Below the pieces are notes generated by a model. The model was not told the origin of the DNA. It worked only from the letters and a program-made list of their open reading frames with translations, and did not search any database. A stretch of 63,613 nucleotides of DNA, the filler included, from Octopus bimaculoides (Eukaryota), in the NCBI RefSeq assembly GCF_001194135.2. It is 8 parts of 8 records of this genome, joined end to end, with 100 filler letters (N's around TTAATTAATTAA, not from the genome) between each part and the next. Parts side by side here need not be neighbours in the genome. Positions count along the whole stretch, not along the records: positions 23,812 to 47,080 come from NC_068988.1; 7 more parts are not named here. One strand, written 5' to 3'. Positions 14,036 through 47,481 of the stretch are shown here, piece by piece; positions within the stretch are counted from its first letter, which is position 1; every line of letters starts with the position of its first letter. A program made the translations under genes and the position numbers.

Positions 14036-14518
14036 GAATATTCTGTTGTTGTTTAGCCACAGGTCAGTCCTGATCAAGCAGACCTATGATCAAAGATGTT
14101 CCACCTATGACCCTCCCATCTTTTATTCAGGCATAGTGTATCTAGGACTACATTATCTAATGTATCGTATATTATTTAATATTAGTGGCTACAGTTGTAA
14201 AAGTCCAGGTCAATCTGAACTAACAGAATGATGATTAAAGATTGTTCCAGATGTGACTTGGTTCACCTGCAGATATGTGTGTGTGTGTGTATGAACATAA
14301 ATGTATAAGTAGACATTATAGGTGTATATGCAGATATTACATATGTTTGTGCATGTGTATGTCAAATAAAATACACAACTGAGAGAGATAATAGCAGTTT
14401 CAAGCTATTAAGATATTTGAACAGGCATTTTGTAAAATACACCTTGTATCTGAAACCAATCTTTCACTATCTGTTTATGTGTTGTATAAGTATATATATA
14501 TGTGTGTGTGTGTGTATG

Positions 14519-24302: not shown

Positions 24303-24512
24303 CTTTTCTACTCTAGGCACAAGGCCCGAAATTTTTGGGGAAGGGGCCAGTTGATTAGATCGACCCCAGTACGCAACTGGTACTTTATTTATCGACCCAG
24401 AAAGAATGAAAGGCAAAGTTGACCTTGGTGGAATTTGAACTCAGAACGTAAAGACAGACAAAATACCACTAAGCATTTCGCCCAGCATGCTAACGTTTCT
24501 GCCAGCTTGCTG
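24303..24512 (-). mobile_element. SINE family B
   Basis: Homology to 13089-13275. Confidence 0.88.
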
Positions 24513-25609
24513 CTACTTATACACTAGATTTTTATCTTGACATTGTTTATTAAACAATACTATAAAACAAACAGCAAATTGTAATCATGTTTCCACTCCC
24601 CTTCCAACTCCTCACCTCACTTCCTTTACTTTATGATGTCAACACAAAAATAATCTCTAAACAAAGTCTCTAGAATATTTGCAAATAAATTGAATGTTGA
24701 AATTTTAATTAGATGAGTTCAGAGAAAAGACGAAATAAAAAAAGAAAAAACCTCTCCTAATTAAGTTTGCTGGTATTCGATAAAAGTTAATTGAGTTGAA
24801 AAGCAGTGTATGTCAACAACAAGACCTTGTTATCTCTTGCTGTCTGACTAGATAAGAACATGTTGGGGAAAATAGCTGCAGTTAACTGTAAACCATAATC
24901 CCCCGCCTTCTTTCTCATGATATCAGTGAAGAAGAAACTAAGATGGGATGTGGCCTAGTGGTTAGGATGCTGCACTCACTATTGTAAGATTGTGGTTTCA
25001 ATTCCTGAACCATGTGGTGCATTGTGATCTTGAGTAAAACCATTTCATTTCACATTGCTCCAGTTCACTCATCCGAAAATGAGTGACCCTGTAACAGACT
25101 GGCATCCTGTTCAGAGGGGTCGTTGCGACCTTGATCATTCATACACCACGGAACACAGGGAAGTGGCCCTATGAGTCCTAGGACTTGTGACGGTACTTTT
25201 ACAGAAGAACTTAATCTAAACTAATCTACAAAAGCAATTATCAAAGCAATAAGTTACTTTTCCTCCTGCTCAATCAAAAGGGTTTTCCATTTTCTTTTTT
25301 GTACTATGATTTACATGACAACCTCACTAATGCTGGTGCCATGTAAAAAGCACCCAGTACACACTGTAAAGTGGTTGGCATAAGAAAGGGCATTCAGCCA
25401 CAAAAAACTATGCAAAAGCTGACATTCAAGATTAATCCAGCCCTGCAGCTCACCAGATCCTGTTGAACTGTTCACCCTAAACCAGCTTGGAAAATGGATG
25501 CATAAAAAGCTTAGCTAAGTGTGGTAACATTTAAATATGAAACAACCAAGTTATTAATTTGCATATCTGATTCTAAGAGACAACCCTATTACTCTTTTGA
25601 CTCTTTTTA

Positions 25610-25847
25610 CTCTTTTACTTGTTTCAGTCATTCGATTGTGGCCATGCTGGAGCACCACCTTTTAGTTGAACAAATCGACCGCAGGATTTATTCTTTGTAA
25701 GCCTAGTACTTATTCTTTTGGTCTCCTTTGCTGAACCACTAAGTTACAGGGACATAAATATAGCAACATTGGTTGTCAACCGACAGTGGTGGGGACAAAC
25801 ACAGACACACAACCATATACTTACATATGTATGTATGTATTTATATA

Positions 25848-25879
<32 letters not shown>

Positions 25880-26038
25880 AGACAGGCTTCTTTCAGTTTC
25901 TACCAAATCCACTCACCAGGCTTTGGTTGGCGTGAGGCTATAGTAGAAGACATTTGCCTAAGGTGCCATGCAGTGGGACTGAACACAGAATCATGTGATT
26001 GGGAAGCAAGCTTCTTACCACACATCCAAGCCTGTGCC
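25610..26038 (-). mobile_element. SINE family A, diverged full length
   Basis: Homology to the other A copies. Confidence 0.88.
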
Positions 26039-26344
26039 TATTATGTGATTTAATCACATTTTCTTTCTTATGGGACATATTTCTTCACTGTTATATATTT
26101 CTTTATCACAGCTTTATAACCATTTCATTATGGTTGTATTAAGGCTTTATTGCTTTTTTATATCCTCTTCTATCACAGTTTTATTATCAATTTTATCACT
26201 GATTTATATCTGTTATAAAACTGTCATATATCTCTTTCATTAGCACTACCTTATATCCCTGGATCATTGTTATATGTAGCTATTTTATTATAGTTTTATA
26301 TCCATGTCATCACTGCTGTGCATCCACGTTATCACAGTCTTATA

Positions 26345-27815: not shown

Positions 27816-28399
27816 ACAATGAAGGTCATTTTGAAATTCAGAGCTCTGGATAACAACGACAACTTAGACACAAATAAATAATATTTATGACAAGATGTCA
27901 AATATGCAAGAAATCTACAAAGAAGTTTTATGTCAACATTGAATTTGACAATCAATTATAACTGCTATTAGGTTGTTGTTAAAGGTTGGCTCTAGTCTCC
28001 AGATGAAAGGAATGCCCCACAAATCAATGCCTTCTAAGTGAATTTGGTTGACAGAAACTAGCATATATATATATATATATATATANNNNNNNNNNNNNNN
28101 NNNNNNNNNNNNNNNNNNNNNNNNNNNNNNNNNNNNNNNNNNNNNNNNNNNNNNNNNNNNNNNNNNNNNNNNNNNNNNNNNNNNNNNNNNNNNNNNNNNN
28201 NNNNNNNNNNNNNNNNNNNNNNNNNNNNNNNNNNNNNNNNNNNNNNNNNNNNNNNNNNNNNNNNNNNNNNNNNNNNNNNNNNNNNNNNNNNNNNNNNNNN
28301 NNNNNNNNNNNNNNNNNNNNNNNNNNNNNNNNNNNNNNNNNNNNNNNNNNNNNNNNNNNNNNNNNNNNNNNNNNNNTATATATATATATATATGTATAT

Positions 28400-28913: not shown

Positions 28914-29850
28914 AGGGCAGCGAGCTGGCAGAGTGGTTAGCACGCCGAGCGAAATGCTTAGCGGTATTTCGTCAGCCGTTACGTTCTGAGTTCAAATTTC
29001 GCTGAGGTCAACTTTGCCTTTCATCCTTTCGGGATCTATTAGATAAGTATCAGTTACGCACTGGGATCGATGTAATCGACTTAATCCCGCTGTCTGTCCT
29101 TGTTTATCCCCTGTACGTTTAACCCTCTGTGGGCAATAAATAAATATAACACAGATATCATTAATCGATGGATTGGCAAAATCGTTAGAGTAGCGGATAA
29201 AATTACTTTTGATATTTAATGACGTCAGTTTTCATACCTGTCTTCATAAACTGTCAAAATCGATTTTCTCTTTTGGATATTTTGAGTAGATAAAATAAGC
29301 AGCAGTCACATAGCAGGGATCGATATAATCGATTATACTTCACCTCAGTCCACAGGATTTGTGTTGTGCCTATGTTAGAAACTCGCCAAGCTTAACTTTG
29401 CCTTTTATTCCTTCATGGATCGATGAAAAAAAGTACCAGTTAAATATTGAGGAGGATGGTATCGACTCTTTCCCTCCTCTTAAAATTGCTGGCCTTTTTT
29501 CCTAAATAAGAAATCATTATTTGGGTGGCAGCAGAATCGTTAAGTTTTGCAATATTTCTTCCGGCTTATTATTTTTATATCTTTTATTTGTTTCAGCCAT
29601 GCTGGGGCACTGCCTTTGAATCAACCATTAAAAAATTATATTAAACAACCTCTATGGCTGAGTCAGAAGAAGAAAGGCAGCAAGTAGGTAGAATCGTTAG
29701 AACGTCGGACAACTTGCCTAGTGGCATTTCTTCTGGATCTGTACGTTCTGAGTTCGAATACCGCCAAAGTGAACTTTGCCTTTCATTCCTTCGAAAGAAT
29801 ATAGTAAAAGTCAGGTAGTGGAGTCGACTTGTAATCTACCCTCACAACTG
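28914..29850 (+). mobile_element. Cluster of SINE family B copies (one young, several old)
   Basis: Copies at about 28914-29140, 29165-29520 and 29673-29850. Confidence 0.8.
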
Positions 29851-35799: not shown

Positions 35800-36115
35800 T
35801 ATTGTATTCCTGTGAAACTTAGACCTGTTATGAAAGGCATTTTAAAATGTTAGAAAAATTCCACCAAAAATGCCTTCGTCATATTTTAAGAATTAAATGG
35901 AATTCTTTTACTCCAAACACAGATATCCTTGCATCTGCAGGCATCCCCTCAATTAAAGCCATGATTTTGAGGAACCAATTGAGATGGTGTGGCCATATTG
36001 TTCGAATGGCAGATGAACTCATGCCGAAACAGCTGTTTTATGGTGAGCTTGCAGAGGGGAAACGTTATCGGCATAAACCTAAAAAAAGGTTTAAGGATGG
36101 CATAAGGACTGCTAT
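35800..36115 (+). mobile_element. RTE (BovB-like) LINE 3' coding fragment
   Basis: LYSCET*TCYERHFKMLEKFHQKCLRHILRIKWNSFTPNTDILASAGIPSIKAMILRNQLRWCGHIVRMADELMPKQLFYGELAEGKRYRHKPKKRFKD; runs into a gap. Confidence 0.9.
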
Positions 36116-36789
36116 NNNNNNNNNNNNNNNNNNNNNNNNNNNNNNNNNNNNNNNNNNNNNNNNNNNNNNNNNNNNNNNNNNNNNNNNNNNNNNNNNNNNN
36201 NNNNNNNNNNNNNNNNNNNNNNNNNNNNNNNNNNNNNNNNNNNNNNNNNNNNNNNNNNNNNNNNNNNNNNNNNNNNNNNNNNNNNNNNNNNNNNNNNNNN
36301 NNNNNNNNNNNNNNNNNNNNNNNNNNNNNNNNNNNNNNNNNNNNNNNNNNNNNNNNNNNNNNNNNNNNNNNNNNNNNNNNNNNNNNNNNNNNNNNNNNNN
36401 NNNNNNNNNNNNNNNNNNNNNNNNNNNNNNNNNNNNNNNNNNNNNNNNNNNNNNNNNNNNNNNNNNNNNNNNNNNNNNNNNNNNNNNNNNNNNNNNNNNN
36501 NNNNNNNNNNNNNNNNNNNNNNNNNNNNNNNNNNNNNNNNNNNNNNNNNNNNNNNNNNNNNNNNNNNNNNNNNNNNNNNNNNNNNNNNNNNNNNNNNNNN
36601 NNNNNNNNNNNNNNNNNNNNNNNNNNNNNNNNNNNNNNNNNNNNNNNNNNNNNNNNNNNNNNNNNNNNNNNNNNNNNNNNNNNNNNNNNNNNNNNNNNNN
36701 NNNNNNNNNNNNNNNNNNNNNNNNNNNNNNNNNNNNNNNNNNNNNNNNNNNNNNNNNNNNNNNNNNNNNNNNNNTATATATATATATAT

Positions 36790-38194: not shown

Positions 38195-38277
38195 CACTTA
38201 TTCTATCGGTATCTTTTGGCGAACCGCTATATTATGGGGACGTAAACACACTAAGATAGGTTCTCAAGCGATAGTGG

Positions 38278-38312
<35 letters not shown>

Positions 38313-38485
38313 CATACGATGGGCCTCTTTCAGCTTCCGTCTACCAAATCCACTCAGAAGGCTTTGGTCAGCCCGAGGCTATAGTGGAAGATACTTGCCC
38401 AAAGTGCAACGCAGGAGCACTGAACCCGGAACCATGCCATGTGGCTGGGAAGCAAACTTCTTACCACACAGCCACTTTCTGCACC
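38195..38485 (-). mobile_element. SINE family A
   Basis: Homology to the other A copies. Confidence 0.85.
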
Positions 38486-39277: not shown

Positions 39278-41414
39278 CAGTTTTCTAATACATGATCATG
39301 GTATATTTTTATGGATATCATTTAAGAAGGTTGGTGTGTGTGTGTGTGTGGAGGGGAACTTTGCCATCTTGGTTATGCATACCAGTAGCCCCCTTTGAGT
39401 TTCTCTCTCTATTTTTTTTTTGTGTGTGATGAGAAAACGTGTCGGGATGGCCAAAGCTGAAACGCCTTTGATTATACGTCTGTTTGCTTGAATTGGATTC
39501 CCTTGTGGGAAAATGTGGGAGTGCCAAAGAACTATTAATTCCACAACCACCACCACTCCTCCTCCTCCTCCTACTACTACTACTTCCGTAACTACACGTG
39601 CCAACGTGAGAATTAAGCCGTTTGACCTGCTTTATTTGACAGTAATTAAATCTACATTAAATAATCTTCTACCGTGTTACGAAGAGGATATTGAATAACT
39701 TAGTCTTAGATGTACTATGTAAAAAACATTTAAAAAAAACGTGATGGTCACGGCTGGAATGCTTTAGCTCACAGGTCTGTTACTGAGGACCAGTTTCCTG
39801 AACGCACTTTTGCTTAAAAGTGACAAGTTTCTTTGACTACAAACTTAGAAATATAACAGACCGAAAGACAGGCAAAAAGATAGATAGATAGATAGATAGA
39901 TGGGTGTCTAGACAGATACATAAAAGAGAAAGATAGAGAGAAAGAGAAAGAGAAGAGAGAGAAATTAGAAGAGATACATATATATATATATTTATGTGCA
40001 TGTACGCGCGCGCGTATATAAAATTTGCAAACTCACCTAAATTGAAGATCCAAAACTCATCTTTCAGTTTTTAATACCAATTAATATTTGTAAACAACCG
40101 ATAAATTAAATCTTTTCCAAAATAATTCTTCCCCTTAGTGTTGGTTAGTTTATGAGATATTTATGTAAACACGAGATAAAAATCACAATTGTTTAGAAGC
40201 GATATAAATAAAACACATAAAGACGGCGCTAATTATGGTAAATTCCTTGCTTCCACGTACAACACACAGAACAGCGATTAAAGAATTATAAGATTTGAGA
40301 AATTCGTCTCTATCTTTCTTTATCTTTTCTTTCTTTTTCAACTGTCCCCTTCGAGTTGATTCGTTTATCTTATTACTGGGGTACTTGTTTTTAACCGCTA
40401 GAGACTTCTTATAATAGTAGTAATAGCATTTAATATGGTCAGAGTCGGAAGTGGTAGTAATAGCAGCAGTAGTAGTAGTAGTAATAGCAGCAGTAGTAGT
40501 AGTAGTGTTTGTTTTTGTTGTTACTGTATATGTTAGTTTTTAAAGTTTGGTGCAATTATTCCTTTTGTGTTCGGCTATATGTCATATCTTTCTTTACTTC
40601 CTTCTTTTAGTTTGGAGTGATAAGTAATATCATAATTAGAAATGTTACATAATTTAAATACAAATCAACTATAAGCACTCACACTGTAAACACTTCCCAA
40701 CTACAGAAAGCTTTTCTTATTTAAATCTGAAGTGCAGAAGTTGAAGTATCAGCGATGAGGCATACACTTCTATATACTTTAGATATATATACAAGTCTAT
40801 TCATATATACGTATTTGTGACTAAAATAAATTTCTAAAAATCAATATTGATGACGAAATCGTGTACGGAATGTAACATTGAGATACAGATTAAATATGCG
40901 ACGGCAAAAGTTTGCATACTAAAACAACGTTTGTCGATATATTGCCGCTAATAAATTTGTAAATTGTTGTTTAATTATTCGGGATATGAATACCGGTAAA
41001 AGTTTTGTTGTTTCTCGTTAGCAACAGGAAAGCTGATTATAGTTGCAAACGAATGGATACGTGGCAAATGTTAGAGATATAAAAAAACAAACAAAAAGCG
41101 AAAGTATTGTCCTGTGCAGTCGCTTTGACTGCTAGCAGTAATAAGTAGGCAGGGGATAGCTAGTGTATGGAGGCCTGAACGAATCATAATACGTGAGTTT
41201 TAGATGCAGGTTTACAAGGGTCCCTTTGTGAAAGTTCTGATATTCCTCGCATACTTTTATGTAATACCATTTCGTATGGAGTCTCGTACGAAAGATAAAC
41301 AGCAACGTTTTATAAACTACGCTTATGTATTTCATTTGCAAGATTCTTGATGTGAAATCATGCGTTGAAACAGATATCGTTATGCTTCGAGATTTTTCTT
41401 TTTTCTTTCCTTCT

Positions 41415-41580
41415 TTTTTATTTGCTTCAGCCACTTGACTGCGGCCATACTGGAGCACCGCCTTTAGTCGAACAGGACTTATTCTTTGTAAGCCTAGTAC
41501 TTATTCTATCGGTCTCTTAAGCCGAAAACACACCAACATCAGTCGTCAAGCGATAGTGGGAGAGAAACACAGACAAACAT
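41415..41580 (-). mobile_element. SINE family A, 3' part
   Basis: Homology to the other A copies; a similar tail fragment is at 34520-34600. Confidence 0.8.
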
Positions 41581-42188
41581 ATACATACATGTATACATAC
41601 TTGTAATTCAACATTGCCATCTGCCGGGGCTGAAGAAATCCCAACTGACATAATTAGTGCTTTTTTAGCCATCTACACGAGTTAATTTATCAGGACATAT
41701 AACGCAGTCCTAGGCGTCATAAACACATCCAAGTTAGGTTGAATGTGCTTATATATATATATATAAATGTGTGTGTGTGTGTGTGTGTGTGAGAATGGAC
41801 TTAGAATCATATGGTTGGGAAACAAGCTTCTTACCATACAGTCACTCCAGCACCTTCAAGACATTTTCTAAGCATTACCCACTATTCTTGTCTCCAAGGT
41901 TGTATTTTGTTCGACTATTCGTCCTCCTCCACCGTCCTCCTCCACCGTCCTAAATCATACGGTGTGTTGTTTCGCTTGTTTTGTTTTGTTTGCTCTTGTC
42001 CCTAATTCTCCGCGACGAAAAATTTTTTTTAGCAGGCACCGCCAATTGGAAAGTACTCAATCTTATCGTTAAAGGTGTGAAACTGAATATCATCAATTGG
42101 TCGATAACTGATGAAAAATTACGGATCTTCTGTTTGTCACCCCTTCGTTTTTACATCCAGTATACATTACATCGTTTGTTTATACATT

Positions 42189-42235
<47 letters not shown>

Positions 42236-43245
42236 NNNNNNNNNNNNNNNNNNNNNNNNNNNNNNNNNNNNNNNNNNNNNNNNNNNNNNNNNNNNNNNNN
42301 NNNNNNNNNNNNNNNNNNNNNNNNNNNNNNNNNNNNNNNNNNNNNNNNNNNNNNNNNNNNNNNNNNNNNNNNNNNNNNNNNNNNNNNNNNNNNNNNNNNN
42401 NNNNNNNNNNNNNNNNNNNNNNNNNNNNNNNNNNNNNNNNNNNNNNNNNNNNNNNNNNNNNNNNNNNNNNNNNNNNNNNNNNNNNNNNNNNNNNNNNNNN
42501 NNNNNNNNNNNNNNNNNNNNNNNNNNNNNNNNNNNNNNNNNNNNNNNNNNNNNNNNNNNNNNNNNNNNNNNNNNNNNNNNNNNNNNNNNNNNNNNNNNNN
42601 NNNNNNNNNNNNNNNNNNNNNNNNNNNNNNNNNNNNNNNNNNNNNNNNNNNNNNNNNNNNNNNNNNNNNNNNNNNNNNNNNNNNNNNNNNNNNNNNNNNN
42701 NNNNNNNNNNNNNNNNNNNNNNNNNNNNNNNNNNNNNNNNNNNNNNNNNNNNNNNNNNNNNNNNNNNNNNNNNNNNNNNNNNNNNNNNNNNNNNNNNNNN
42801 NNNNNNNNNNNNNNNNNNNNNNNNNNNNNNNNNNNNNNNNNNNNNNNNNNNNNNNNNNNNNNNNNNNNNNNNNNNNNNNNNNNNNNNNNNNNNNNNNNNN
42901 NNNNNNNNNNNNNNNNNNNNNNNNNNNNNNNNNNNNNNNNNNNNNNNNNNNNNNNNNNNNNNNNNNNNNNNNNNNNNNNNNNNNNNNNNNNNNNNNNNNN
43001 NNNNNNNNNNNNNNNNNNNNNNNNNNNNNNNNNNNNNNNNNNNNNNNNNNNNNNNNNNNNNNNNNNNNNNNNNNNNNNNNNNNNNNNNNNNNNNNNNNNN
43101 NNNNNNNNNNNNNNNNNNNNNNNNNNNNNNNNNNACAATCTGATTAATTAGATATCCTAGAAGAGAATATGACCTGAACAACAAAATTTGAATAAATAAA
43201 AAAGAACAACAGTGCTGCTCTATTTAAACAATATTCTATCTGAAG

Positions 43246-43390
43246 AAGATGGTGAGCTGGTAGAGATCGTTAGCGCGCAGGGCGAAATGCTCAGTGGTAT
43301 TTCGTCTGTGTTTACGTTCTGAGTTCAAATTCCGCCGAGGTCGGCTTTGCCTTTCATCCTTTCGGAGACGATAAATTAAGTACCAGTGAG
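43246..43390 (+). mobile_element. SINE family B
   Basis: Homology to 13089-13275. Confidence 0.88.
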
Positions 43391-43843: not shown

Positions 43844-43894
<51 letters not shown>

Positions 43895-43908
43895 NNNNNN
43901 NNNNNNNN

Positions 43909-43965
<57 letters not shown>

Positions 43966-44731
43966 TATATATATATATATATATATATAAGTATAGCTAT
44001 GTAATATGTGTTGATATACGCTTGTATGTGCGGGTATATATGTATATATTTGTACATGTGTTTGTATATGTACATATATATGTATATATAGGTATTTTTA
44101 TATGTGTATGTGCATGTAAGTATATATATGTATGCATGTGCCAATGTGTAAACACATTAATTTGAATATATACATTTCATATATTCATAACTGACTCACT
44201 GTTGATAAGAAAGGCTTAAATGATATACACCTTAACGGTCAATTTTTTCAGACCTTTATCTATACTTGGTTATAAATGTGACACATAATAATGTGAACGC
44301 TACTGATCTATAATTTTCCTGAATTGTATCTTTTACCAAAGCAATGGAGATAATTCTTCTATAGCGGTTGACTAATAATTTTTACGATCTAACTTATCCT
44401 TCATTTATTTTATTGTCGAATTCCTCTCTTGTATATTTAAGTATTCCTTTCTTTTATTTACATTTTATCAGTACAAATTGTAAAGCTGAGTTTGTGTGTG
44501 TGTGTGTGTGTGTTGCATCTATAGAAATCCACACCTTACAAGATAGCAATCTGGGAGTCGCACCAATGGATTCCTCATGGTGGAAAATGCCCGAAATCGA
44601 CCATTTATTATTATTCTTTTCTTCCTAAGACGTGAAGTTTTGCATTAAAAATAATTTTAAACAATAACTTCTAACAATTTTCAAGTCGGAGCATTTGCAA
44701 ACATGAATTAAGTCCCCTTCTATTGACGGCA

Positions 44732-45030
44732 TACTATAGCCTCAGGCTGACCAAAATCTTGTGAGTGGATTTCGTATTCGGAAACAGAAAGAAGACTGTC
44801 GTATATATGTGTATATTTGTGTATGTGTGTGCTTGTGTCTTGTGTTTGTACCCCCACCATTGCTTGACAACTGATGTTGCTGTGTTTACATTCCTGTAAC
44901 TTAGCTGTTTGGTAAAAGATACTGACAGAATGAATACTAGGCTAACAAAGAATAAATCCTGTGGTTGATTTCTCCGACCAACGGCGGTGCTCCACCATGG
45001 CCGCAGTCACATGACTGAAACAACTAAAGC
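44732..45030 (+). mobile_element. SINE family A, diverged
   Basis: Homology to the other A copies. Confidence 0.8.
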
Positions 45031-45053
45031 AATAAAAATCTATGCCATTTCAA

Positions 45054-45627: not shown

Positions 45628-45705
<78 letters not shown>

Positions 45706-46250
45706 TGCGTACATATATACATACACATTCATATTATATTATTATATACTTTGCAAATATATCAAAGTTTTGATGAATTTAGGAACGTGAAACAAGCCTT
45801 TCAAGGATAAGGTGATGTGAAAATACGTTTTGATTGCAATACAAATAAATTATCAGCCCTTGTATTCAATTAGACATTTTCTTATAACAGAAAAAGAGAA
45901 AAAGAAGAACACACAAAATTTTCTTCCAGCCATTATATTCATTTATTAAATTTTCTGTGCGATGACACTTTAAAAAATTAAACAGATTTATGATTTACGA
46001 AAGGAAGTTAACTAAAAATTTACATGAAGAAAAGGAAGTGTTTAATAACATTTTATGTAATTAAATCATTAATAAGGCTATCAAACACTGCGTCAGTGGT
46101 ATATATATAAACTATATTAACAACAGAATTATTTATTACAAGGTAAAATTAGTAATCCATATAAGTGATTGAATTATTCAGACAGGATCGAGCTATTTGT
46201 TGCATTACATTCTTGGACAATTACAGAATGAGAATGAATTCGGATTTATC

Positions 46251-46486
46251 TCAGCACACTAAGTGTTCGTGAGGCCACCACCAATGGCGAATACAGCACT
46301 CGCTTTTCCACCAAGGGATGAGTTGTCCTGCACAACATGCTTTATACCAAGCGTTGTATGGTGCATTATTACAACAGGCATTGTCACTATTAGTTTTTTG
46401 GTGAACTATATTGTTGCAACAGAATTGCGTATGTGGATCATAGATTTGATTACCACAAATGTACCATGGAGCGAAAGACTGTACTG
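46251..46486 (-). CDS. Terminal coding exon of a galaxin-like (double-Cys repeat), Cys/Trp-rich small protein; upstream exon(s) not found
   Basis: Manual translation after a polypyrimidine acceptor (ttcttcttttacag|), phase 1: VQSFAPWYICGNQIYDPHTQFCCNNIVHQKTNSDNACCNNAPYNAWYKACCAGQLIPWWKSECCIRHWWWPHEHLVC*. Cys spacing is C-x11-CC-x13-CC-x11-CC-x11-CC-x12-C, with CG..xYDPxxQxCC and CC..xYNxxxxxCC motifs typical of galaxin repeats. AATAAA lies at 46132-46137 on the minus strand. Confidence 0.8.
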
Positions 46487-47481
46487 CTGTAAAAGAAGAA
46501 AATAATCGAAATGAGCACAGCTAAGTGTATTATACACAAATACATATACATTTAGAAAATAAAATCCATTCAATTAACAAGTATTTATAACATTAAAAAA
46601 CTATATAACATATATTTAAATCATATGAAAAATTCTCTTAGAACAGTTAATTCACACACACCTGAACGTCCGAAAATGTATGCAGGTCAGATGTAAGCAT
46701 TTTTTGCAATCTTCAGCAATTCATTCGAATATGTTATCAGGTAAACCTTATAGCACATATGTTTAAAAAGGAAAATGCGCTTGGCCAAATATCCACACAT
46801 ACGATCTCTATTAATTCCCATCTTTTTAGAAAAAAAGAAATTTGAAATCTACTCTCATATATTGTGTATATAGAAAGAAAGTAAATTTTTTCTCAAACCT
46901 GTATCCACATATGCACATCCATCCATCCATCCATCCATCCATCCATCCATCCAGCCATTCATCCATCCATCCAGCCATTCATCCATCCATCCATTCATTC
47001 ATCCATCCATCCATCCATCCATATGTACACACATTCATACATGCATACGTATGTATGGATATGCACATATATATATGTATNNNNNNNNNNNNNNNNNNNN
47101 NNNNNNNNNNNNNNNNNNNNNNNNTTAATTAATTAANNNNNNNNNNNNNNNNNNNNNNNNNNNNNNNNNNNNNNNNNNNNCCCTAATAATTTCATGGTCC
47201 TATTTTTGACATTCTCACAACTGGTCCTACTTAAAATGTCAAATTGCATTGTTACATTGTCATAAATGTCACATTGTATAATACATTAGAGTACTCTACA
47301 TATATACAGACATACATACATTTATGGGTATGTATATATGCATACATACAGGTATATATATACATACATGTACAGATATAAGCATACACACGTGCAGACA
47401 CATATGTGCATACATGTATATGCAAATACACATGCAAACACAGGTATGTTTGTATGTAAATGCATATACATATCTATCTTT

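Follow-up and report, generated by a model that had tools for sequence, protein, structure and literature searches.

The stretch of Octopus bimaculoides DNA analysed here (63,613 nucleotides in eight joined parts, in the following the window) contains a short cysteine- and tryptophan-rich exon at 46251-46486, on the minus strand of the part derived from NC_068988.1 (23812-47080, in the following the piece). This is almost certainly the terminal exon of a gene with two exons, the product of which is catalogued as A0A0L8FU16. The predicted protein qualifies as a galaxin-like repeat protein on three counts, namely its Pfam score, its repeat architecture and its signal peptide. The best explanation as a whole, and very probably the correct one, is that the exon is the last of the A0A0L8FU16 gene and encodes a secreted galaxin having a defence or binding role, the role being the tentative part.

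The 77-residue peptide encoded by the exon is 100% identical, over the full query, to residues 18-94 of UniRef100_A0A0L8FU16, as found in a search of 5.8 billion proteins. The entry, an O. bimaculoides "Galaxin-like repeats domain-containing protein" of 94 amino acids which begins MMQRTLIIFTFLLFVAAVQSFAPWYIC, is an uncharacterised, automatically named prediction. A word-indexed protein search retrieved A0A0L8FU16 alone, and, with a small alignment as query, one paralog in addition. The sequence-only reading of this DNA had regarded the exon as hidden. Since protein and galaxin-like label are in the databases already, and the gene model is public too, the gene is not new, and as gene discovery the result has no weight. 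What is added here is the location of exon 1, an intact, mis-annotated ortholog in O. vulgaris, an additional exon in O. sinensis, and evidence that the protein evolves in an accelerated manner on a fixed cysteine scaffold. An exact-sequence lookup of the 94-residue protein in the assembly index gave no record; genomic context was reached through relatives, namely a segment of O. vulgaris OX597821.1 (L002) and two segments of O. sinensis CM016866.1 (L001 and L003). No paper citing A0A0L8FU16 or related accessions was found in the literature, and only two O. bimaculoides galaxins are discussed in the papers searched (PMC12773714).

The exon opens with a clean acceptor, followed by 77 codons and a TGA stop. 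The acceptor AG occupies 46488-46487, and the exon begins at 46486; the junction reads ttcttcttttacag/CA GTA CAG on the minus strand, in the context ttcgattattttcttcttttacag/CAGTACAGTCTTTCGCTCCATGG (in nucleotide strings a slash marks a splice junction). In-frame stops are found within 12 codons upstream of the acceptor, so that hardly any of the open frame precedes the splice site. Two bases, CA, precede the first full codon GTA, and the junction is accordingly in phase 1. Translation from 46484 to 46251 yields VQSFAPWYICGNQIYDPHTQFCCNNIVHQKTNSDNACCNNAPYNAWYKACCAGQLIPWWKSECCIRHWWWPHEHLVC, with the TGA at 46253-46251. The ten cysteines of the peptide (residues 10, 22-23, 37-38, 50-51, 63-64 and 77) form the pattern C/CC/CC/CC/CC/C, with a spacing of 12-15 residues. 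Acceptor, open frame, cysteine pattern, stop and downstream AATAAA are all as originally described; tryptophans are seven (residues 7, 46, 58, 59, 68, 69 and 70), not six. The acceptor is a NAGNAG tandem (acAG/CAG/TA, 46484-46488), conserved in O. vulgaris, and 46486 is the site used by the catalogued protein. Of the alternative acceptors, 46483 preserves the reading frame and would cost the signal peptide an Ala at its end, and use of 46478 would cause a frameshift. AATAAA is found at 46137-46132, 114 nt past the stop, and at the same place in O. vulgaris. The hexamer is common in the AT-rich DNA of this region (74 copies in the window), and because of this it is weak evidence when taken alone, and was down-weighted. 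The piece includes 87 stop-free stretches of at least 60 amino acids, and this is the only one featuring four CC pairs and 11 Cys and 7 Trp. The galaxin-type open frame is far more than a chance occurrence, as both the CC pattern and the passing of the curated Pfam threshold indicate. The features of the locus, all on the minus strand, are the following.

46511..47080, minus strand: distal intron, with a (CATC)n microsatellite at 46916-47022; the interval 46487-46932 aligns to the O. vulgaris intron.
46487..46510, minus strand: 3' end of the intron, consisting of the polypyrimidine tract ttcgattattttcttctttt and the acAG acceptor, read from the sequence and found also in L002; the junction matches FVA-A-VQS.
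46486-46484, minus strand: second in-frame CAG (NAGNAG), read from the sequence.
46254..46486, minus strand: coding part of the terminal exon, CA (split Ala codon) plus 77 codons, VQSFAPWYIC...HEHLVC, supported by translation, Pfam, A0A0L8FU16 and the ortholog at L002:14229-14464.
46251..46253, minus strand: TGA stop, from translation; a stop is found at the homologous O. vulgaris position.
46138..46250, minus strand: inferred 3' untranslated region, from stop to polyadenylation signal; 87.9% identity to the O. vulgaris 3' flank, gaps ignored.
46132..46137, minus strand: candidate polyadenylation signal AATAAA, conserved within GTAATAAATA in O. vulgaris.

Family membership was assessed by profile comparison. 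With an E value of 3.4e-13, the peptide scores 50.1 bits on Pfam PF24748 (Galaxin_repeat), for which the curated cut-off is 28; residues 9-77 are aligned to profile positions 59-129 of 131. The O. vulgaris ortholog and an O. sinensis paralog score 37.5 and 37.4 bits, respectively. The galaxin-type reading made from the sequence alone is thereby borne out, as well as by the identity to A0A0L8FU16. In the peptide, units of the type C-G-x-x-x-Y-(D/N)-P-x4-CC alternate with units of the type CC-x13-CC, and a half unit follows. The mature protein is made in this way of two galaxin repeats, about 27 amino acids each and having two Cys-Cys motifs per repeat, and of a half repeat. A phmmer search run exhaustively over 1.84 billion representatives identified 408 relatives at E<=1e-3. 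Nearly all are long and feature 5-18 matched repeat stretches, and few measure about 100 amino acids; relative to these multi-repeat proteins the copy number of the 77-residue protein is low. The match to the IGFL family (Pfam PF14653) reaches 17.9 bits, below the cut-off of 25 (E 0.0033), and the peptide does not qualify as a member. Searches of solved structures by sequence retrieved nothing meaningful, the best match being a hydrophobin (E 1.3).

The complete protein starts with a signal peptide, MMQRTLIIFTFLLFVA, supplied by the A0A0L8FU16 entry. Its N-terminus, MMQRTLIIFTFLLFVAA/VQS, can be recognized as such by inspection, with a charged n-region, 12 hydrophobic residues and small residues before the cut. 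Encoded by a separate exon of its own and joined to one repeat-encoding exon in a 94-residue product, it agrees with the very short secreted galaxin envisaged previously. A0A0L8FU16 derives from the same gene, the shared sequence being identical: the codon of its Ala17 is split into G in exon 1 and CA in exon 2, which matches the phase-1 junction and places the acceptor at 46487/46486.

The signal peptide has no match in 23812-47080 by either six-frame word search or tblastn, and a tblastn search for paralogous exons in the piece, at E values up to 100, gave noise only. Exon 1 had been supposed to lie in an upstream gap. The runs of N in the piece (28086-28376, 36116-36774, 42236-43134 and 43895-43908) cannot hide it, because the DNA from the exon to the edge is free of them. 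The position of exon 1 is suggested by O. vulgaris. The whole piece is collinear to L002, in reverse orientation (window 24123-46932, L002 75776-13771). Exon 1 of the O. vulgaris gene, at L002 10001-10049, is ATG ATG CAA AGA ACA TTA ACC ATC TTC GCT CTC CTG CTG TTT GTA ACA G/GTAAG, that is ATGATGCAAAGA...GTAACAG/GTAAG, and encodes the 16-residue signal peptide plus one base, hence in phase 1. Its ACA G end and the CA preceding GTA in O. bimaculoides fit together, as expected for a separate signal-peptide exon. The second exon starts at 14229, after TTCTATTACAG/CAGTACAG (TTACAG end), and ends with TGA at 14467. The intron measures about 4.2 kb in O. vulgaris, and only 594 bp upstream of the acceptor are present in the piece; therefore exon 1 is located beyond the edge of the piece, which is at 47080. 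The same signal exon, complete with its ATG and its GTAAG donor, is found in both O. vulgaris and O. sinensis.

The O. vulgaris ortholog (OX597821.1, L002:14229-14467) sits in this collinear locus and is intact. The acceptor context TTTTCTTCTATTACAG/CAGTACAG, the open frame, ten of ten cysteines, the stop and AATAAA are all kept; the one indel is an in-frame change of 3 bp, which adds one residue, and no frame-disrupting change is found. Amino acid identity to the O. bimaculoides peptide is 64%. Next to the cysteines, PWY, Y-[DN]-P, PYNA, IPWWK and RH-WW are constant between the species. The signal peptides are identical at 13 of 16 residues.

Residues outside this conserved set change faster than neighbouring non-coding DNA. 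The coding exon is 78.8% identical at the nucleotide level in the two species; identity is 88.9% in the adjoining intron (446 nt, window 46487-46932), 87.9% in the 300 nt past the stop, and 87.5-93% in collinear non-coding blocks across the piece. With every cysteine kept, the exon has thus accumulated change at about twice the rate of the adjoining intron and 3' flank (odds ratio 2.1, p = 3e-4, Fisher test of exon against flanks). The first, second and third codon positions differ at 0.26, 0.25 and 0.14. Nonsynonymous (dN) and synonymous (dS) divergence are 0.267 and 0.203, and the dN/dS ratio is 1.32, a value that is not significant alone, being based on a single pair of species with about 41 synonymous sites. 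The comparison of the exon with flanking DNA is the firmer statement. On the whole, the cysteine framework and several aromatic positions are under constraint, and the surface is fast-evolving. The pattern is that expected under diversifying selection, and suggests short octopus galaxins as candidates for it.

The same data bear on the notion that the exon is a chance open frame, or a decaying, unexpressed pseudo-exon. A pseudogene would show a dN/dS near 1, and open frames of such length are common in the piece. However, the Pfam score is well above the cut-off, and open frame, ten of ten cysteines, acceptor and stop have all been kept at 21% divergence. In simulations of neutral substitution, the probability that the frame and the ten cysteines are retained is 5e-5 at the divergence of the exon, and 0.0085 at the rate of the flanks. 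Moreover, divergence exceeds that of the neutral flanks, instead of equalling it. A pseudo-exon is hardly credible.

O. sinensis hosts relatives of the gene. The protein XP_036361356.1 ("galaxin-like", 96 amino acids) is encoded by one signal exon and one repeat exon. It resembles the O. bimaculoides protein in having a signal peptide, a two-exon plan, the C/CC/CC/CC/CC/C framework and an aromatic, Tyr/Trp/His-rich C-terminal tail. Its signal peptide, MMQRTLTIFALLLFVT, is identical to that of O. vulgaris, and matches that of O. bimaculoides at 13 of 16 residues. About 9.5 kb upstream of XP_036361356.1 exon 1, at L001:393-562 (CM016866.1), we found a paralogous mini-galaxin exon, VQSCYWNYCGGHWYNPYTQRCCGTTIIPWWRAHCCRGWLHGWPWWNRHWHWYLVC (VQSCYWNYCGG...WHWYLVC, followed by a stop), which encodes 55 amino acids, with 7 Cys and 10 Trp, and features a similar acceptor context. 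No gene is called at this position in the record, and exon 1 of the corresponding gene must lie further upstream. The exon has one repeat fewer and scores 15.8 bits, below the PF24748 cut-off; it matches weakly the IGFL profile, as the O. bimaculoides peptide does. L001 was tried as the O. sinensis ortholog locus and rejected, being collinear neither to L002 nor to the window outside of repeats. For this reason the L001 genes are regarded as paralogs, and differ from the O. bimaculoides gene also in mature identity, which is 36-48%.

A third O. sinensis sequence is XP_036361078.1 (168 amino acids, galaxin-like), located at L003:10001-25719 (CM016866.1, 38.5 Mb). The gene consists of a 15-codon signal exon, an intron of about 15 kb and one repeat exon, and the protein has the aromatic tail CCLWPNFWRCRV. 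A tight tandem cluster including this gene was considered and discarded, as the two O. sinensis genes are 36 Mb apart on the same chromosome. Since XP_036361356.1, the L001:393-562 exon and XP_036361078.1 all have aromatic tails, the Trp/His-rich tail is a trait of a small octopus subfamily, not a one-gene oddity. Trp, Tyr and His make up 23-36% of residues across the family. Net charge is +0.4 in the O. vulgaris ortholog, and +2.4 and +3.5 in the O. sinensis paralogs.

Galaxins are known from corals and from the bobtail squid. Coral galaxins (Galaxea fascicularis, Acropora millepora) similarly have a signal peptide and tandem repeats of about 30 amino acids with two di-Cys motifs each (PMC2726143), an organization which is found in the octopus peptide, with its four CC motifs. 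In contrast, they measure about 290-300 amino acids when mature, have an isoelectric point (pI) of about 4.5, carry a dibasic processing site and reside in the skeleton matrix (PMC2726143); the octopus protein has 77 residues, a pI of 7.04 and no KR, RR, KK or RK after the signal peptide, and hence falls outside the coral galaxins sensu stricto. Clear galaxin orthologs have been reported only in scleractinians (PMC2726143). The Euprymna scolopes proteins EsGal1-EsGal10 are closer in kind, being cephalopod secreted proteins made of di-Cys tandem repeats of the same family (PMC12773714). They have been described as having up to 7 repeats and charges from +5 to +21.5 (PMC12773714); the octopus protein has about 2.5 repeats and a charge near 0. 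Vertebrate IGFL proteins (PF14653) are also small secreted proteins, of about 100 amino acids, with CC motifs, and the weak profile match mentioned above reflects a resemblance in cysteine pattern only, not membership.

The mature protein has a mass of about 9.1 kDa, 77 residues, a pI of 7.04 and a net charge of -0.55 at pH 7.4, and thus lacks the strongly cationic character of EsGal proteins. We propose that it would be secreted, with five disulfides stapling a compact stack of repeats, and that conserved, exposed Trp and Tyr residues may form a face binding membranes or glycans. The protein would bind a changing partner outside the cell. The likeliest setting is an epithelium or a mucosa, with the protein serving to fend off or manage microbes, as has been proposed for the squid galaxins EsGal1-EsGal10. 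By analogy to known galaxins, extracellular defence or binding at an epithelium is a tentative assignment, to which we lean among the roles considered. The ten E. scolopes galaxins are among the top differentially expressed genes in the epithelia of the light organ and the accessory nidamental gland, and peptides derived from their repeats inhibit bacteria (PMC12773714). The sequence-only reading had suggested an antimicrobial, gland or matrix peptide. As the octopus protein has no positive charge, an action similar to that of EsGal1 is not expected, and binding to membranes or glycans mediated by Trp would be a more plausible mode. A conserved leader, a fixed cysteine scaffold and a fast-evolving surface are typical of proteins that deal with changing external partners, among them immune effectors, toxins and reproductive proteins. 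A more daring version of the proposal, possible though doubtful, is that the gene is one of an octopod-specific group of Trp/Tyr-rich "mini-galaxins", in which a near-invariant signal exon and a fixed Cys-Cys framework are combined with a surface under diversifying selection, and which would act as uncharged, aromatic-faced binders of microbial or prey targets, unlike the cationic squid galaxins. Such an architecture is that of toxin and immune-effector superfamilies.

Several points weigh against the reading of the exon as the terminal exon of a secreted galaxin involved in defence or binding. Public gene models are the only basis for expression. The excess of dN over dS does not reach significance by itself. 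AlphaFold2, run with a two-sequence alignment, gave a mean pLDDT (predicted local distance difference test) of 47.6, with confidence for the signal-peptide helix only and no usable model, and this affects both the disulfide pattern and the aromatic face. A classical cationic, membrane-active mode is unlikely, the charge being about -0.5, versus +5 to +21.5 in EsGal proteins. Octopods are not known to have either of the two symbiotic organs where EsGal genes are expressed. Finally, the O. vulgaris ortholog sits inside the model CAI9727408.1, which joins part of the galaxin exon to a distant membrane-protein gene. This model (350 amino acids, L002:10001-105956) takes in exon 1 and the orthologous exon up to codon 40, exits at an internal G/GT near L002:14350, and continues with exons located 22-92 kb downstream. 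Small exons come first, and those at 69-92 kb belong to a transmembrane protein labelled "seven cysteines N-terminal domain".

If CAI9727408.1 were correct, the galaxin exon would be the N-terminal part of a larger membrane protein, and not a terminal exon. The O. vulgaris annotation is what speaks for this. Yet the homologous O. bimaculoides sequence at the internal donor is AAT AAT GCA, with no GT; nothing in the O. bimaculoides piece corresponds to one of the bridging exons (L002 36699-36821); the remainder of the exon, skipped by CAI9727408.1, is conserved as coding sequence, with the rest of the frame, the remaining cysteines, the stop and AATAAA all kept, which would be unexpected for an intron. 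In addition, the stop is where the gene models of both O. bimaculoides and O. sinensis terminate. Because the internal GT is absent, the bridging exon is unmatched and the skipped remainder is conserved as coding, CAI9727408.1 looks like a chimeric model, and we consider membership in a larger gene very unlikely.

Two other functions are to be weighed against a defence or binding role. The protein might be part of an extracellular matrix, structural or biomineral, for instance that of the statolith, stylet, beak or sucker lining, where its aromatic residues would bind chitin; it would then resemble coral galaxin and the galaxin-like shell proteins of bivalves. It belongs to the same repeat family as the coral skeletal galaxin (PMC2726143), mollusc galaxin-like proteins have been linked to shell formation (PMC12773714), and Trp, Tyr and His, abundant as they are across the family, are conserved. 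Aromatic richness is in general compatible with carbohydrate binding. The size of about 300 amino acids, the pI of 4.5 and the dibasic site of coral galaxins (PMC2726143) are nevertheless not shared by the octopus protein, which has 77 residues, a pI of 7.0 and no dibasic site. Framework proteins, moreover, are not usually expected to outpace neighbouring non-coding DNA, and a matrix function is improbable. We judge similarly unlikely a toxin-like or reproductive peptide secreted by a gland, one of a family combining a conserved signal peptide with a hypervariable mature part built on a cysteine framework, as in cone-snail toxin superfamilies. In its favour, near-identical signal peptides in O. 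vulgaris, O. bimaculoides and the paralog of O. sinensis are followed by mature parts sharing 36-64% identity on a fixed cysteine framework, and the coding exon evolves faster than its flanks. But this evolutionary pattern fits immune effectors equally well, a literature search on cephalopod salivary glands turned up no galaxin-like protein, and no paper citing these accessions was found.

With the exon read as the last of the A0A0L8FU16 gene, the comparison has modest value for annotation. It reveals that the O. vulgaris ortholog is concealed within a chimeric-looking model of 350 amino acids, and that a shorter, Trp-rich paralogous exon of O. sinensis has no gene called in the record, and may help to correct public models. 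A small, single-exon member of about 9 kDa is easy to synthesise and fold, and is a convenient entry to what the galaxin repeat binds.

Other sequences of the piece are worth recording. An open frame at 35847-36115, on the plus strand, MLEKFHQKCLRHILRIKWNSF...NQLRWCGHIVRMADE, is cut off by the N gap at 36116 and has no Pfam match; it reads like the C-terminal tail of the second open reading frame (ORF2) of a non-LTR (long terminal repeat) retrotransposon. Two families of short interspersed repeats were identified, one at 24349-24513, 28916-29146 and 43251-43387, the other at 25600-26040, 38196-38476, 41403-41600 and 44732-45038. Both are found in dozens of copies, at 72-88% identity, across L002, and occur also in L001. 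Microsatellites include, next to the (CATC)n tract at 46916-47022 in the intron, an (AT)n tract at 45631-45701, about 550 nt downstream of the stop, while (TC)n (43846-43894) and degenerate (ATATGT)n (43909-44133) tracts adjoin the small gap.

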